Positions 3,225 through 64,000 of a DNA stretch of 64,000 nucleotides are shown piece after piece. How positions within the stretch are numbered: the first letter of the stretch is position 1; every line of letters begins with the position of its first letter. The translations under genes were made by a program, and so were the position numbers. Source of the stretch: Anthoceros angustus. Its lineage: Eukaryota; Plantae; Anthocerotophyta. Location of the stretch: the NCBI GenBank assembly GCA_010909165.1, contig MU008178.1:508369-572368 (forward strand), in the 5' to 3' direction. Under the pieces are notes generated by a model that searched no databases, had not been told where the DNA came from, and saw only the letters and a list, made by a program, of their open reading frames with translations.

Positions 3225-6200
3225 TTTAGACTTCCAGGTCTAAAGGGCTTCCCATCTCGTAGGAGTATTTGATGCCTCTGTTGGCTGTCCTCTTTAGATA
3301 CCTAAAGACTCCCTTAACACAACTCCAATGTTCCTGTCCAGGGTTTTCCAGATATTGAGATAGAACACTCGTTGCGTAAGCTACCTCTGGCCTAGTTGCG
3401 TTAGCAGCATAGATCAGTTTCCCTACTACTTGTCTATATGGCACATTTGCCATCTGATCCTTCTCACTGTGTGTGGTAGGTGACATACTCTTACTGAGTT
3501 TCAAACCAGTGGGAAGGGGAGTAGCAACGACCTTGGCATCTTTCAAACCGAATTGCTCAGCACTATCAAGTAAATATCTAGGTTGTGTCAAAGTGATCAC
3601 CTTGGTAAGCCTGCTCCTCTGAATATGGATTCCAAGGCAACTCTGAAGTGGACCTAGGTTTGACATTTTGAATTTTGTGGCCAGGAGATCTGTGATCTTA
3701 TCGATATAAGGCTGACTGTTGCTGCGGAGTATTAGATCGTCGACATAAACAACTAAGTAACATGTGACATCTCCATTAATATATATGTAGAGACTACCAT
3801 CAGCTCTACTCTTAGTGAATCCAAGAGCCAGCAGTTCTGTGTCCAGCTCAACATTCCACTTTAATGTTGATTGCTTAAGTCCATACAAGCATTTTATCAG
3901 CTTTCAGGCATAGTCTTCTTTGCCCTTAACCTTGTAGCCAGGAGGTTATTGCATATAAATCTCAGATCAGCCTTCATCTGTAGCCGGCTTTAACATCGAA
4001 CATCCGGTTCGTAATCTTGTCTGGCCACAGGCTGCGAGATGGTGCGAAGGGTAGCAAGCTTGACGACTAGAGCAAAGGTCTCGAAGTAATCAAGTCCTGG
4101 AACTTGGGAGAATCGTCTTGCAACAAGTCGGGCCTTGTATCTATCGAAGGTACCGTCGGCCTTAACCTTTAGCTTAAATACCCATTTACATGACACCATT
4201 TTTCTGCCTGGTGGAAGTTTGGCTAACTCCCATGTGCCGTTCTCTATCAGGGATTCATACTCAAATTGGATTGCCTTCTCCCACTCTTTGTGGTCAGGTC
4301 TGCTAAGGGCTTCCTGAAGTGATTGTGACTCAACAGGATCTAGTGACATAGCAGAATTGACCTGAACATGTGAAGAGGTGGGTCTGAAGTCTGGAGCTTG
4401 ATAATAATCTGGAGCTCGTCGTTCCCGAGTTGGATAACAACTTACAAGCTCTGGAGCCTGGTCAGTATCAGAATCACTGTTTTCATCATCAGGTGAGTCT
4501 TCAGCATCATCTGAATTTGGCTCATTGATTTGAGGAGGTTGCTGCTGTAGATCATTTGCATTTTCGAGTCCTGCATTTTCTATGCCTACGGCCTGCTCAT
4601 GTTGTTGCTGTGCTTCCCCCCCAGCAGCAGCAATCTCTTCAAGAGTGAAGTCTTCAAAGACAGTAACATCAGGGAGTGCAGACTCGCGTAGATCGTCCTC
4701 TAGAGCGGAAGTAGCTCCCATTGTGTGCCAGAACCGTCCTTCATCAAAGGTAACACTACGTGAGTAAACGACTTGAGCACGAGAAACATCATACAATTTA
4801 TATGCCTTGATGCCCTCTGTATAGCCAATCATAAGAAGCTTCTTGGATTTTGCAGACAGCTTCTTCCTCTTCTCCTTGGGAATAAAGGCATAGGCGATGC
4901 ATCCAAAAGTTCGAAGGTGGTGGAGAGAAGGCTTGCGGCAGAAGAAAGCTTCATATGGAGTCTGTCCCTCAACAGCAATAGTTGGCAGCCTATTTAGAAG
5001 GTAGACATATGTCATAAGGGCTTTAGCCCAATAGGGAAGTGGTAGGGAAGCATGATGTAGCAGGGAGGAAACCATCTCCTGCAGAGTTAGATTCAAATGT
5101 TCAGCTACAGCATTTTGCTATGGCGTATAAACCACTGTAAGTTGCCTGCCAATTCCCTCTTCTGCACAATATGCCTGAAACTCATGTGATGTGTAGTCCT
5201 TGAAGTAAGAGAAGCATTCACTTTTGGCTTTCAGAATATAACCAATGACAAATCTTGTCTTCTCATCTGTGAATGTGAGGAAATACCGACCACCTCCAAG
5301 AGAGGGCTGTGAGAGAGGCCCACATATGTCAGTGTGTACCAGTTCAAGAACTTCGGAAGCTCGATGTGGAGTTCTGTTCTTGAAGGCTACCTGGTGACGC
5401 TTGGAGAGCACACAGGCTTCACACAAAGGTAAGGATGGTAGTGGCCCAATCTTTCCATCATAATATAGGTCACTAGTAGCTAGCTTCTGTAGCTTGGCAC
5501 TGTGAGGGTGACCTAGGCGTGCATGCCATAACTTAACCTTCTCAACTTGTTTTGCAGATACTTTTGAAGTTTGAGAGGCTAGATGGGTCTGGGCTACACC
5601 AATATTTGTGTGCGAGTGGAGCAAATCATGATCTGATGATCCATAGACTAGTATTTTTCGATGATCAAATGCATCGATAATTCTGCATTCTGTTGGAGTG
5701 AACAGGATGTGACTGTTGTTATCCATGTTAAGCTTCCTAACAGAGATGAGATTTCTAGTCATTTCAGGGACGTAATAGACATCTGTGAGAGACAGTGTGA
5801 TCCCTGAAGGAACTGGAATTTTCACTGTGCCCATTCTTGGACTCCAAGATAATTTTTGAAGGGGGTGAATAATCTTGAAGGGGGTTTTCCGCAAATAATC
5901 TCTGAAGGGGGTTTTTGATGGGCCCTAAAACAGCATTTTGAAGGCATTGCGAAAAACAGCTTCGAAAAAAAGTGTGTCACCCAGTAAAGTTACTACTTTC
6001 CATCCAACAATGTTTGTATCGAATGGTGGTCGCAAACTCGAATCTAGGGGAATAATGCAGAGTAGGAACGGTGAGGAAGGCCGTTCCTGCCGCGAAGGGA
6101 CGACTGGAAACTCATTTTTGGGGGAAAAATGTGGTTTTGTTATGACACCACAAAAGCCACGGAAAGGGTATTTCCCTAACACAGTAACATCAGCAACCAG

Positions 6201-54909: not shown

Positions 54910-57900
54910 CCTCGGCGCAGAGAGGATGAACGAGTGCTGGACCCGGCGCAAGGTAATCGCTGTTTCTGAAGAAAGGTTGAAGCTTGCGAGCATTGATCAC
55001 GACCCCATGACGGTCCGATGTACGTCTACCCTGAAGCTCATGACGTGCAGTGTCGATTTGTCGGTTGCCTTCAGAATCAGAGCCCCAGGAGCGCAGGGCG
55101 GACATCGATAAGATGCCGGGGGAGTCGAGCGCTTTCTGGGATTACCAGTTCCTGTTCAAGTCGCAGCGGCAGGAGGTGCCGACGCCTATCCGGCTGGCGC
55201 TGGTGCAGGGGAGCCTCCCGCAGGATCTGGCGGGGGATTATTATTTGTGCGGCCCTGGAATTTTTACCGACGACCACGGTTCCTGCATCCACCCGCTCGA
55301 CGGCCACGGCTACCTTAGGAAATTCAGCTTCCGAGATAGGGCAGCTGAGTATTCGGCCAGGTTGGCGCTTCAACCAGTTCCGATCCATTTGCCCCTCTTC
55401 GCCAGTGTCCAGATGCTGCTGCAGATGATCCTCAGCCACATCATGAGGAGTGCTGTGGGCTGATGGTGGTGGAGCTGTGGCCATGGCAGGTACATCGACA
55501 CGGAGGCTAAAATGTCGGAATACGACACATGTAGCGATGAGTGGAAGTTCGTCTACAGAGGGCCCTTCTCCGTGCTCAAGGGAGGATCGCGTTTGGGGAA
55601 CACCAAGGTGATGAAGAACACGGCCAACACCAGCGTGCTCAAGTGGGGAGGCAAGCTCATGTGCTTCTGGGAAGGCGGCGAGCCTTACGAAGTGCATCCC
55701 ACCTCCTTGGACACCGTCGGCTTGTTCAGGTAACACAACATTTGCGTACATCCAGCACGTGACACAGACCGGGTTAGCACCTATGTTGTTGCTCACCATG
55801 GGCCTGCAATCCTGGCAGCATCACTTCCAACTTTGGGAACAAAATTGTCACCTCCAAATCTGCCCACCACTCTGTGAACTCTGAGGAATCGGACCACCCC
55901 GTGGAAAGACTGAAGCGGGTTGCGGGAGAAGTGCAACGGCTTTGGAACAATTCCATGACTCCTCAGCAGATCGCCGTTGCCCTCCACATCGCCGGAGTTT
56001 CTTTCACAGCCAAAATGTTGCAGCCCATACTGAACGGTAGGGGCAAGGGCGTCCACCAGCTTCACTGTCACCAGTGCCACATCCGTTTTTTGTCCTCACG
56101 GGTGCATCCACTTAGAGTCTTGTGCGCCATCCAGCGTCCATTTTCGTCCGCATCCACCTCGAGTTTCTGCCCTGGCGTGCACCCATCTTACCCGTTCACA
56201 GCTGTATGTAGCAGTGCTTGACAATTACCACGGCCGCCGCTTGCAGGGATGTATGCCATGCCTGTGGAGAGGACCCTGGCTCATGTCAAGGTGGACACCA
56301 AGAAACAACGCCTTATTCTCATCACCTGCCGGGCAGAAGACATGATTCTGCCCATCAGCACCTTCACCATTTACGGTAAACATTTGCTGGGAGTCCTCGC
56401 TCCTTGTGCTAATGATCACCTCGGTTTTTGCTGTCATATGGTGATCAATCACTGATCAGTGGTGTGGCCTGCTGTATCCCATGACTGCAGAGTTCAACAC
56501 CGAACTGGAATTGCAGCAGAGAAAGGAGTTCGTGTTGCCGGAACAGCTCATGATCCACGATTGGGGCCTCACAGACAACTACTACATCCTTGTTGCAAAT
56601 CGGGTCCGGATGTCTCCAGCTGGTAAGAGCAACCCCACCGGCCCGATCCAAGTTACAGTCACAGCATGCACATTGGACATCATGTGCTGACGTGATGGTC
56701 GTCTGCATCCAGGCTCTGTGGGTGCACTGCTGGGAGTTTCCCCCATGATCGCCGCCCTCAGCATGGACGACTCTCTGCCTCACACTCCCATGTTCCTACT
56801 GCCGAGGGCGGATGAAGCCAAGGACAGCAGCAAAGCATCTCGGGACTGGAGCGTCCCCATCAAAATCCCGAAGCAGTACTGGCTGCTGCATACAGCAAAC
56901 AGCTACGAGGAAGTGGACGAACAAGGCAACCTCCGTGTTGTCTTGGACGGCTCCGTCTGCTCCTACAAGTGGTTCTCCTTGAACCACATGTTCGGTGAGT
57001 CTCTCAATCTTGAGCAGCCGCACACTTTGCTTTGTGATCAATCACCAATGTTTCAAAATTCTCGACTCTCATACATGTGTCTTGCGCTGTGCCCGCAGGC
57101 TACAACTGGCAAAATCGGCGGCTGGACCCTGCCATGATGAACGGCACCACGCAAGGTGAAATTGCACCAGCCCACATGTGCCGGATCTCGGTGGCTGTCC
57201 ATTCATCCGCCGTAGCCTCGAACACATCTGCAGAAAGACAGCAGCACAGAGTTCCTGCCAGTCCTGCCTACTTCCCCCGCTACCCTCTTTCCCCCAGCCT
57301 CAAAGGCCACACACAAGAACGCTTCCAACCTGCTGTCAGCTTCTCCTTCGCCAATCTGACTCCCATCCCCGAGCACCCAAAGCCCGACAGATTACCATTG
57401 TTCCTCAAACCCGCTCCTGCCCCACGCAAACCAGTAGAGCTGCAAAACTTCACAATAAGCCCCCTCCCCTCCTGCGACTTCCCGACCATCAACCCCCACG
57501 TCGCCGGCCACAAGCACAAGTTCGTCTATGTGGCGGCATCCTCAGGCCACCGCTCGGAGCTGCGCAACTTCCCCTTCGACTCCATCCTCAAGCTGGACGG
57601 GCCGGACGGGAAGATGGTGTCCTGGTGGGCAGGAGACCGCACCTTCGTGGGTGAGCCGGTGTTCGTGCCCAGGCAAGGCTGCGTCACGGATCCCACCAAC
57701 CCCTACTTCAAGGAAGACGATGGCTATCTCCTATTGGTCCAGGTGCGAGCCATCACACAGCTGCCCATTCCTCCAGTAAGCTCAGCCATGGCCTCTCACT
57801 AACTGCTCTCGGCTTGCATGCTTGCAGTACGCAGCAGGTGAAAAGACATGCTACCTGGTCATCCTGGATGCCCAGCGGATAGGCAAGAGAGACCCCATCG

Positions 57901-57971: not shown

Positions 57972-58298
57972 TCAAACAGGTGCATCCCAGGAAGCCCTTG
58001 ATCATCAAATAGAAGCATTTGGCATGTAGATACAAACTGTGAACAGCAACATGTTCCTTTTTGTCGCTGATCTCGCACACCACTGTTTCCATGTACATAT
58101 TAGGTACATCCTCTTGGGCACCGATTCTTGCTCGCGAGACGATACACATGCAAGCTTTTGTTGGTTTTGCAGTGGACGGTTTGTACTGCACAAGAAGCCA
58201 ATGTGCACATGCCAGCTTGTCAAGTTGGTGGTATTGACAGGTCATGTCGAATATCTAGTATCGCAAGTGATACATTTATGTAACCAAAAACAGTATGA

Positions 58299-59599
<1,301 letters not shown>

Positions 59600-59935
59600 G
59601 TGACTGAGGAGGACTTGAGCATGCGGCAAGTGCTTAATGTCCATGTCGGATTATGAACGGAGTTTACTTGAGAAGGCTTGGCCTGCAAGCTCACGGTTCT
59701 TTTGCCTGGTTTCGTTGCTCGGGTGTTTTTTCTAGGGATAGCTGAAGCAGACTTTCACCTAGCTTTGCTAGTCCTGTGTTTGGGGTCTCTATGGAGGGGG
59801 CGTTTGGACAATATTTATGGCTCATCCTCAGTTGTGCTGGAATTTGATTTGCTAGTTTGTGACTGGCTTGTGATATTTTCTCTGCACCTGCATATCTCCG
59901 TGGTTCACGTTTATCTGCTGTCACTAATCAAAATC

Positions 59936-60046
59936 GGCACCAGGGGTGCTTGTTCTGGTTCAGCACTACTCTAGTGCTGTGCTAAGATCAGGCTGAGAGA
60001 GTCCCTTCGTACCTGAACAGGTTAATACCTGCGTAGGGAGCGTGCC
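59936..60046 (+). promoter_or_regulatory. TPP (thiamine pyrophosphate) riboswitch aptamer in the THI1 3' UTR
   Basis: GGCAC-CAGGGGTGC..[P3]..GCTGAGAGAGTCCCTTCGTACCTGAACAGGTTAATACCTGCGTAGGGAGC-GTGCC. P1 GGCAC/GTGCC, P2 AGGGG/TCCCT, conserved UGAGA (59994-98), P5 CAGGT/ACCTG with a TAAT loop, and a P3 hairpin CAGCACTA/TAGTGCTG. Matches the plant THIC-type consensus. Confidence 0.96.
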
Positions 60047-61332
60047 TATTTGTGGTTGTCTTTTTGTATGTGCATCAGGGGAAGATGAAGCGTTGCCCGA
60101 GGGCTTCAAGTGACAACGCTGTGAGCTTGTGGCATCCAGTGAGATGAGCTATTATCTCGACAGAGCAGGTAAGTTGCCTCCTCCTCCAAAAAGCACGATT
60201 TTTCCGGGAAGGTTTTGAACGTATGATCGACGGCAAAGTTCTAGGTTAAGTTTAGGCTTCAGGCTTGACGTCAAGCAACTTAGGGCGACGTGAGTCCATG
60301 CATGTCTTCTTGCCAACTTGCTTCCTCCTGGTGAAGGAGCAACCTCGTTGAAACCTCGTTGGAAGGTAAGACCTTCAAAGAACTTAGCCTCCTGACTATC
60401 TCTGTTCTGGGGTTGCTTTGCGTTTGCACATGCAGCAGTGACCGTTATTCTAACTTTTAAGACCTTGTGCGCTGGATTGTAGCTTCAGTCATGTCTTCCT
60501 TCCGGTAGAACCTCAGAATGACAGGCTCTCCACGAGTCTGCATTTGTTTGATACGCTGTGTTGTTACATCTGGATTGCAAGTCTAGCGAAGGCCCTGATC
60601 AGAAAACTAGAGTGCTTCTGTACACCTCGGTATCGAGGTTCTCCTGGTTTGAAGTGGCTGTCCATTTTGTTGGTCGTGTCTAGGTTTTGAACATTTCCTT
60701 GGAGTGTTTTGCACTGAGTCTGGCAGGTTAGGCGTAAAGTACGAAACTTGTCCTGGTAGACCTCTGTACGTTGGTCGATAGGTCGATACCTCAAGGGTGT
60801 AAAAGCCGTTGGGTGGATGATCGACCCAGCATCCACCGTGGATGCTGTGGAGTTTAGGGTCGGTACGTAGTCTCGACAAGTTTCTCGGTTTTGAAAGGAA
60901 CGTAGGAGGTTGTGAAATTTGTATTCCGTCAGAATGGCATGTGGCTTGTGTGTGAAGCTGTGGGTTCTGTCGATTGGGATGACGGGATGACAGTATTACA
61001 GGATGATGGGAGTCGTGTCGCCTCTTAGCTCAGTATCCCGTGCGCTGAATCATTTCTCAACTACCTTATAAATTTACTAAATGGAGATCAGTGTCCCAAG
61101 AGCGTCCAATAATTCATTGACATGTGAGGTGGTTAGCGGTTGTCACCGGTGATGGTCGGTAGAGTTAGAATTGCACGTGTCATGCCGTGCCCCCTCTCGC
61201 GTCTGGCCAAGCAGTCTCTCTCCTACATTGACGGCGAGGATGTGTATGAACTTACTTTCTTGAGGGGGCGACATGAATGATATTGGCATAATTTTGAGTT
61301 TTAGTGTCGTGATGTCGATACATATGAGTCTT

Positions 61333-61575
61333 TGGCCAATGGCTGATACATAGGACTCTATGGCCAATGGCTGACACATAGAACTCTATGGCCAATGGCT
61401 GATACATAGGACTCTGTGGCCAATGGCTGACACATAGGACTCTGTGGCCAATGGCTGATACACAGGACTCTGTGGCCAATGGCTGGTACACAGGACTCTG
61501 TGGCCAATGGCTGATACACAGGACTCTGTGGTCAATGGCTGATACACAGGACTCTGTAGCCAATAGCTGATACAT
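61333..61575 (+). repeat. 28-bp minisatellite (TGGCCAATGGCTGATACACAGGACTCTG), about 9 copies
   Basis: Units start at 61333, 61361, 61389, 61417, 61445, 61473, 61501, 61529, 61557; no spacers. Confidence 0.95.
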
Positions 61576-64000
61576 GTGGGCAATGGTAACTCCATAGGGT
61601 CCTCGTAGGTACTCCTTAGGCTGTGATTCTCTATATATCCACGCGCTATGTGTTGATGAGAGACATAAATTATTAAACATGTTCGTGTAGTTCATCATCA
61701 ATTCACTATTTCTTCTAGATTGATAGTTTGTTACTTTAAGATAGTTAGTTGTTGTATTTAACCAGAAGCGGGAATGTGTAACAATCTTGGGACCTATGAC
61801 CCTTCAATGTTTTCACAGGTTAATTAAATTATCCCTAAGATGTGTTGAAGTAACATCCCTTTTTTACGAGGTGGGGTAAGCACGTAGTGAGAAGCAGGAA
61901 TACCACCAGCTACCAGTCCTCTTGTAGCCTCATCCTTCACTGAGTAGCAGGTAAAGAGTTAAAAGAGCAATACCACCAGACTTCAATATTTGCCCTCCAA
62001 GTAGCCCTGTCCTCTAATGGGATGCAAGCACAGAATTACAAGAGCAACACCTCTAGATATCAGCTCTAGCCTCCAATAGTCCCGCCCTTAAATGGGGTAA
62101 CCTCTAGCTAGCATGTACAACAAGGAGCCCCGTTTCAAAACTTGCACTCTTACTGAAAGTCAGCAAGAACACGAAAAGTTAAGAAGAACATTAAAAGCCA
62201 TGTTGATTAGAATACCAAAAGCCAATGAGAATCTGAAGTACAGACAGAGGTCTCTACCTTCGCCGAAGGTAGGCACATTGATCTCCGTCAGGTACTCTAA
62301 TCTCCGTTTTCCTCCTCACAACTTCACTTTAAGCACATTGGTATACTCGGTTCCCTCTTGGTTCCCAAGTCCTTGTATGCCCCCTTTAGGTTCCCAAATC
62401 CTACATGCTCCTTTTAGGTTCATGCTCCTTTTAGGTTCCCAAGTTATATTCTCGAAAGAGTATAGTCCAAGTGCTAGGATATTTTCTTTAGAGCTCATAA
62501 CATCTTTTATATAGGAAGGTTTACTTTATTTTAAGTAATTATTTAAATTAACATGTTTTTGTTAAACCTTAAGTTAAGTTTCACTACCTCTAACCACCTA
62601 ATTTCTAACTTAGACTTAGGGATGTATCTCTCTTATGGCTTTTTTATATATTTATTTATTTAATCTTATTTTTAAACATTATATATAATTTTGTCTCAAT
62701 TGGTAGTGTGCAGCACTAATTGGTTTTGAAAGTATTTTGTCAATGCCTTGCTATGATCACGTCATTAGTTCATGCTTTACTCTACCCAGATTTTGATAGA
62801 TTTTTTGAGTAAATTAAACCAACTAAGCTCACAATAGCTATTGTGTAGTGTTCTTGGGTTTACAATTGTTTCTGTTGAGACACAAGGATAAAACACATCT
62901 AGTATAAGATGTAGTGCCAATTTATCTTGGCCCATTTAGGCATCGACACAAAATACAATTCAGCAGCGAACAAGACTTTGCCCTCAACAATGCGGGCCTG
63001 AACAAATAAGGAGACCCCCAAGCCTTTTTGCCCATACTCTTCGAACAAAATAAGGAGAGTCCTAAGTTGTTTACCCACTAGATGCAAGAAAAGTATGAAT
63101 TACTTACACATTATGGTAGCCTTAGACTACATCTAAATTGTTATTAATTTATCATGGTGGCTTTACGTGCTTTCAACTCCAAAAATACCCAACTCACTCT
63201 AATTGAGCCTTTTGGCTCTTTTGTATGATTGTGCTTTATTTCTGTATACCATTTTTTTCAGGTTAAGGTACCTTATGCGGGAAAATGATGTATACACTTA
63301 TTGTATGATAATTTTTCATGTTAAGGTCTCCCTTTGTGGAAAAATAATTGAAAACGCTTGACCAATATATTTGGTTGAAAGCAGGAGAATCTTTAAATTA
63401 AACTCGAAAAACCTCTCAAAGAACAACGTCATTCTATGTGGATGTGTTGTTCGAATATGTGGAATCGAATTTGATCCATTGTGGGGTTAATTCATTGATT
63501 GAGAGATTGGGGGGTTGCTCGTAATTTAACATGTTATACATTACATAAGCCTACCTTGGTAATGGTGACTTCTCTTACCTCTGACTTCTCTTGTCAATTT
63601 GATATGCTTATGAACCGGGGTCATTTATCATGTATTGTCCACTCGTTTTGTTTTTCATAGTTCAATTGATTGTGAATTTAATTTAAAGTAGCTTCGTAAG
63701 GCTTTACAACAAATTGCCTTGATGGCTTTTTACAACACTCATAAGGCCGTACAGCAAGCAGCCTCGTAGGTTTTTTTACTGTAGGCGGCCCCGTGGGGCA
63801 TTGTACAAAAAGTGGCCCTACAGGGATTTTTACAAAAGATGGGCCTAGTAATCCCTCTACAATAGAGGATGGATAGTATCCCATCCCAGCAGTAATCTGT
63901 CTCAAGGGTACTTGATCGCGGAGTTCCAAGAGAAGAAGAAGAAGAAGAATGTGTAACTCTCCTAAGGACGGAATTCTGGCATGGTATTGATAAAAGACGG

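Follow-up and report, generated by a model that had tools for sequence, protein, structure and literature searches.

The 64-kb stretch of hornwort DNA analysed here (the window) carries a THI1/THI4 thiazole synthase gene of two coding exons and, past its stop codon on the same strand, an aptamer of the TPP riboswitch class with a long insertion in P3 (Table 1). The two coding exons were searched as separate queries. Exon 1 matches the Pfam family Thi4 (E 6e-110), and its protein shows up to 94% identity to THI1 of bryophytes and ferns; the translation of exon 2 is homologous to the C-termini of three plant proteins (P0001, P0007 and P0028). A protein search for near hornwort relatives of THI1 returned nothing closer than a match of 94% identity over 84% of the query. 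The catalytic cysteine reported in a first-pass annotation of this DNA was found in the exon 1 translation, in the motif QSCMDP.

The transcribed structure of the region was read from a single alignment of assembled contigs, rather than raw reads, onto the window. Run X1 is RNA-like; its contigs are identical to the window and stem from the same organism. Runs X2 and X16 represent two related organisms. X1 contigs skip three GT..AG introns (57743-57827, 57980-58103 and 59352-59437), and the donors verified in this way are all weak (GTGCGA, GTGCAT and GTAATC). The last of the three is the THI1 coding intron. The upstream neighbour of THI1 is a carotenoid cleavage dioxygenase of the RPE65 family with its stop codon at 57969-71, and the intron at 57980-58103 lies in its 3'UTR, starting 8 nt past the stop; it is removed in X1 and retained in the contigs of the relatives (X2 and X16). 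On the other side, no coding gene is evident 3' of the aptamer up to position 64000.

Table 1. Features of the THI1 locus in window coordinates; a slash within a motif, here and in the text, marks an actual or potential splice point.
Feature	Start	End	Strand	Basis or remark
THI1/THI4 thiazole synthase coding exon 1	58449	59351	+	301 codons; SCMDP catalytic Cys motif inside
THI1 coding intron, GT..AG	59352	59437	+	absent from RNA-derived contigs of runs X1, X2 and X16
THI1 coding exon 2	59438	59599	+	TGA stop at 59597-59599
3'UTR spacer, stop to aptamer	59600	59931	+	transcribed; two relatives ~93-94% alike, indel-free across 59600-59826
Branch-point-like CTAAT	59924	59928	+	A 16 nt before the P2 AG
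TPP riboswitch aptamer RF00059 with long P3 insertion	59932	60057	+	Rfam cmscan
P2-start AG, CCAG/GGGTGC, candidate THIC-type 3' splice site	59942	59943	+	bases 1-2 of the P2 5' strand (cmscan)
AG abutting GCTGAGA, ATCAG/GCTGAGA, candidate THI1-type 3' splice site	59990	59991	+	homologous AG is the acceptor in L003/L001 and P0007
Pyrimidine-rich tract ending CAG/G, acceptor-like candidate	60058	60078	+	directly 3' of aptamer; AG at 60077-78
Long transcribed 3' extension past aptamer	60058	61280	+	X1 contig record 3
Donor-like CAG/GTAAGT	60166	60174	+	GT at 60169; unspliced in X1 contig; stretch unalignable with relatives
Acceptor-like CTGAC, pyrimidine tract and TGCAG	60391	60435	+	similarity to relatives resumes at 60379; plausible partner for the 60169 donor

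The aptamer is the sole Rfam match in the window. It scores 65.0 bits against a gathering score of 54.3 (E 1.7e-10) and aligns untruncated to model positions 1-105 of 105, which bears out the earlier report of a complete aptamer after the THI1 stop. The distance from the stop is 332 nt to the start of the Rfam match and 337 nt to the start of P1. The cmscan alignment contains the conserved core, namely the CUGAGA junction, the pyrophosphate arm (ACCUGA..CAGG..UAAUACCUGCG..AGGGA) and helices P1-P5. The match is well beyond chance and, judged from its primary sequence and predicted helices, the element is a genuine representative of the TPP-sensing RNA class; the small splice-like motifs around it are, taken singly, within chance. 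Folding of 59590-60090 was uninformative (z +0.43).

The X1, X2 and X16 contigs run from the THI1 coding sequence through the aptamer, and the proposition, set out beforehand as one that would count against a riboswitch, that THI1 transcripts never include the aptamer therefore does not hold. Contig record 3 of X1 (2566 nt) enters the coding sequence at 58816, lacks the coding intron and continues unbroken from 59437 to 61280, extending a further ~185 nt into a tandem repeat of 28 nt. This repeat is an array of 9.2 copies with 92% matches (61317-61575), lies within the transcribed 3' extension of THI1 and is where the RNA contig ends. The spliced coding sequence of THI1 and an unspliced tail containing the aptamer are continuous in one contig, which makes the aptamer a part of the THI1 mRNA. 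Contigs of both relatives likewise span the coding sequence through the aptamer to 60075, at ~94% identity to the window; beyond that point they carry 409 letters of different sequence in place of 303 nt of the window, and the alignment resumes over 60379-60561 (in X2 as two pieces, 60379-60439 and 60494-60561). The unspliced THI1 form has a 3'UTR of at least 1.7 kb, and unspliced RNA with a very long 3'UTR predominates in all three species. No spliced 3'UTR isoform was found in the contigs of the hornwort or of its two relatives; this is weak evidence of absence, because contigs retain dominant forms only and drop minor isoforms. The first-pass annotation had described the splicing platform of the riboswitch as visible at this locus. 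That wording was too strong, as the contigs show no hornwort isoform spliced in its 3'UTR and the platform is deduced by homology.

The joint transcript also bears on what the aptamer serves. Control of a downstream gene is ruled out by the presence of the THI1 coding sequence and the aptamer on one RNA contig and by the lack of an evident coding gene up to 64000. A related reading takes the aptamer for a relic, conserved but without activity, or assigns it to a transcript of its own downstream of THI1. It could appeal to the fact that one contig spanning two genes is in itself no proof of one transcript. We regard this reading as very improbable: a contig joining the spliced coding sequence to the aptamer was obtained in each of three species, and, as set out below, the aptamer core has stayed nearly invariant from hornwort to lycophyte while its flanks diverge.

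For comparison, the THI1 loci of other plants were fetched via their proteins and scanned with Rfam. An aptamer lies 3' of the THI1 stop in five of the six other loci at the gathering score and also in L014, an mRNA contig. The aptamer-bearing loci are those of Sphagnum balticum (L004), a Sphagnum-like scaffold (L001), Riccia fluitans (L005), a liverwort-like contig (L002), Selaginella moellendorffii (L007) and L014; together with the window they make up the seven loci compared below. Rfam scans found no aptamer within reach of the Ceratodon gene (L006) or of the moss paralogue represented by L008-L013. This Ceratodon purpureus THI1 copy, which lacks the riboswitch, has a U1 snRNA gene 1.3 kb downstream (L006 5797-5955, 124 bits). 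Across the seven land-plant aptamers the core is invariant or nearly so and the pairs of P1, P2, P3, P4 and P5 are kept. The main variation is in P3, which is much longer in the window than in the other six. The hornwort element is thus orthologous to the THI1 riboswitches of mosses, liverworts and a lycophyte. The C-terminus of the Adiantum protein P0009 resembles a read-through of the aptamer, as far as can be told from the protein sequence; P0009 was left out of the comparison.

Three acceptor-type signals accompany these aptamers. The first-pass annotation had placed a branch-point-like CACTAAT at 59922-28 and an AG at 59942-43 inside P2, and both are there. A CTRAY motif with its A 15-16 nt before the P2 AG occurs at all seven THI1 loci, and the distance from it to the second AG, the one abutting GCUGAGA, ranges between 34 and 64 nt. 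A pyrimidine tract ending in YAG/G likewise lies 18-33 nt past P1 in seven of seven. Besides the two AGs listed in Table 1, the long P3 of the window contains three more.

Direct evidence for splicing within the aptamer comes from moss. The metatranscriptome mRNA L003, 93.5% identical to the genomic locus L001, lacks two introns in its 3'UTR. The first runs from CAT/GTAAGT, 14 nt past the stop, to ...AAAAGCAG/GCTGAGA, its acceptor AG abutting GCUGAGA, and its removal takes out the 5' strands of P1 and P2 and the whole of P3. The second starts 55 nt past the aptamer. The acceptor of L003 is also that of P0007, the annotated model of Riccia fluitans, whose donor GT overlaps the stop codon. Splicing in this model, which is 403 aa long, takes out its own stop, and the reading frame goes on across the 3' half of the aptamer (...SATA/LRENPQYLIRIIPAKGEC...; L005 4175-4330); the resulting C-terminus may be a genuine variant that depends on the riboswitch, or else an artefact of annotation. 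The claim that splicing goes to the P2 AG therefore stands only in part: it agrees with the branch-like spacing at all seven loci and with the THIC-type acceptor, but the moss mRNA and the Riccia model splice before GCUGAGA. The fixed branch spacing favours the P2 AG and the observed transcripts favour the AG before GCUGAGA, and both may be used.

On the donor side the hornwort differs from its counterparts. A donor of the GTAAGT/GTATGT type is found between stop and aptamer in all six other loci, and none is found in the hornwort within 59600..59931. The hornwort has a weak donor candidate, TGA/GTGACT, with its GT at 59600-01 directly past the stop, a placement analogous to that of the moss and liverwort donors. 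The lack of a consensus donor is not decisive, because the three verified donors of the window are also weak and TGA/GTGACT may suffice. As for the consensus donor proposed downstream of the aptamer, CAG/GT is indeed present at 60166-70, but the X1 contig, from the same organism, reads straight through the site, and the sequence around it cannot be aligned with the relatives.

The P4-P5 arm was searched for complementary partners in the hornwort 3'UTR, with shuffled UTRs as the reference. The segment CCTGTGTTTGGGGT at 59773-86, which had been put forward as a sequestered 5' splice region, has the sequence given for it, yet its pairing with P4-P5 reaches only -10.5 kcal/mol, and the GTs within it are poor donors (GTGTTT and GTCTCT). 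The best upstream duplex of 24 nt with P4-P5 has -19.3 kcal/mol and lies at 59785, where 39% of the shuffled UTRs match or beat it; the best downstream duplex, at the 60169 donor, has -17.8 and is matched by 57% of shuffles. Neither the duplex searches nor the searches for contiguous helices, both compared with shuffles, found a P4-P5-complementary segment beyond chance in the hornwort UTR. A duplexfold of the whole UTR gave long duplexes without meaning. The minimum free energy and centroid folds both contain a helix of 10 bp between 59590-59599, the last THI1 codons and the stop, and 59988-59997, the acceptor and GCUGAG; it was rejected as a candidate, with 28% of shuffles giving one as good and none of the other loci sharing it. 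In the moss L001, a donor-like CAG/GTATAT pairs over 12 bp with the 3' strand of P4-P5 (ATACCTGCGAAG; 5395-5406 with 5600-5611), and 6% of shuffles match this. The moss pairing resembles THIC-style masking, yet the L003 mRNA used the stop-proximal donor.

Taken together, it is probable that the window element is the THI1 TPP riboswitch of non-seed land plants, present here in a hornwort, and that TPP thereby exerts negative feedback on THI1: processing of the 3'UTR would depend on TPP and involve a 3' splice site internal to the aptamer. With TPP at ordinary levels, the 3'UTR would be left unspliced. As TPP rises, folding of the aptamer would change how a 3'UTR intron is used, one that ends at a 3' splice site within the aptamer, either at CCAG/G (59942-43), as in THIC, or at CAG/GCUGAGA (59990-91), as in THI1 of moss and liverwort. 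The resulting mRNAs, with long and spliced 3'UTRs, would be expressed poorly or degraded. Splicing in the hornwort itself, the donor and acceptor that it would use, its dependence on TPP and its effect on mRNA stability are all expected rather than observed features of this scheme. That the unspliced form predominates in three species grown under ordinary conditions fits a state of low TPP with the intron retained. The logic of THIC, in which the intron-retained form is short and stable, is not evident here, because the unspliced 3'UTR is already at least 1.7 kb long.

How the switch would act on splicing can be read in several ways. The platform proposed in the first-pass annotation has a donor within 59773-86 masked by P4-P5 at low TPP, splicing to the P2 AG by way of CACTAAT at high TPP, and an additional intron from the 60169 donor that strengthens NMD. 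Parts of it have counterparts elsewhere: the branch-like motif keeps its 15-16 nt to the P2 AG in seven of seven loci, THIC uses the P2 AG as an acceptor (PMC5853225), a second downstream intron in the 3'UTR is real in the moss L003 and annotated in Riccia, and an acceptor-like site that could serve the 60169 donor exists at 60391-60435. The masking step fares worse, given a duplex of -10.5 kcal/mol where 39% of shuffled UTRs equal or exceed even the best upstream one, and given the poor donor GTs in the segment; the 60169 donor is unspliced in X1 in a stretch without alignable relatives, and THI1 transcripts elsewhere use the other AG. As a whole, this platform is distinctly unlikely.

A different proposal does without THIC-style masking of a 5' splice site. 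TPP-dependent folding would instead hide or expose the branch-like motif, the two internal AGs and the distal pyrimidine-AG, or would steer 3'-end processing and stability without any splicing. The hornwort UTR has neither a consensus donor nor a P4-P5 complement, the three acceptor-type signals are all conserved across at least five lineages, and three species have as their main RNA an unspliced form with a very long 3'UTR, all of which agrees with this proposal; a fungal TPP riboswitch with a different, long-range pairing is also on record (PMC3597705). However, the weak TGA/GTGACT may suffice as a donor when the verified donors GTGCGA, GTGCAT and GTAATC are weak too, and moss L001 does have its 12-bp donor-like complement of P4-P5. 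On balance it is unlikely. A further reading might be entertained, doubtfully, in which THI1 has a platform of its own, distinct from that of THIC: splicing at the AG before GCUGAGA would destroy the aptamer, the branch site 15-16 nt from the P2 AG and the distal pyrimidine-AG would frame the region, and control in the hornwort would be exerted through choice of the 3' splice site or through 3' end formation and not through masking of a 5' splice site. The preferred reading, negative feedback by TPP-dependent 3'UTR processing with a 3' splice site inside the aptamer, holds the acceptor to either internal AG.

Passages in PMC3665906, PMC10226581, PMC4260697 and PMC11521341, citing Bocobza et al. 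(2007), state that THI1 of 'ancient plant taxa', or non-seed plants, carries a TPP riboswitch in its 3'UTR that was lost in seed plants. Because papers already state this, the window element is a new example of a known switch. A literature search linking hornworts to a THI1 TPP riboswitch found no paper. Its assignment to the THI1 riboswitch class of early-diverging land plants, as the first-pass annotation had it, agrees both with the Rfam scans of the other loci and with PMC3665906, PMC10226581 and PMC11521341. It shares with the THI1 riboswitches of non-seed plants the gene, a position in the 3'UTR 120-340 nt past the stop and a near-identical core, and with the moss, liverwort and lycophyte loci also the flanking branch-like and pyrimidine-AG motifs. 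It differs from the other THI1 riboswitches in belonging to the hornwort lineage, in its much longer P3, in having no consensus upstream donor and in having the longest spacer of the seven loci.

The mechanism of the 3'UTR riboswitch of plant THIC is described in passages of PMC10226581 and PMC5853225 (Wachter et al., 2007; Bocobza et al., 2007). [quoted passage not shown] The hornwort element resembles THIC in having a 3'UTR aptamer with a candidate internal 3' splice site, with CCAG/GGGUGC present, and long 3'UTR forms. It lies in a different gene, however, and no P4-P5-complementary 5' splice site is detectable in the window; unlike the 7-nt loss in THIC, splicing of THI1 homologues before GCUGAGA removes P1-P3. 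The association of a eukaryotic TPP aptamer with alternative splicing of a thiamine biosynthesis gene, a probable one in the hornwort, is shared with THI4 and THIC of Chlamydomonas and Volvox and with NMT1, THI4 and NCU01977 of fungi (PMC3597705, PMC11521341). Unlike that of the window, these riboswitches lie in 5'UTRs or in introns of the coding region and act via upstream ORFs, premature stops or long-range pairing, the last described for a fungal TPP riboswitch as a different mechanism (PMC3597705).

The hornwort element leaves the general picture unchanged and adds testable details for a poorly studied switch: an acceptor in THI1 unlike that of THIC, two conserved flanking motifs that resemble splice signals, and a hornwort copy without an obvious donor. 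These are relevant to riboswitch mechanism in eukaryotes and to the engineering of thiamine content. With this locus, a hornwort would join the lineages in which riboswitches on both THI1 and THIC still govern thiamine synthesis. This supports the view that such dual control is an ancestral trait of land plants that seed plants have lost; the THIC member of the pair may be represented by a second aptamer transcript in X1. That transcript, contig record 4 (3307 nt), matches the window only in the aptamer core at 59989-60047, with 2 mismatches in 59 nt, and is probably the THIC riboswitch of this genome, encoded elsewhere. Its aptamer is followed by a pyrimidine tract of its own and CCAG/G.
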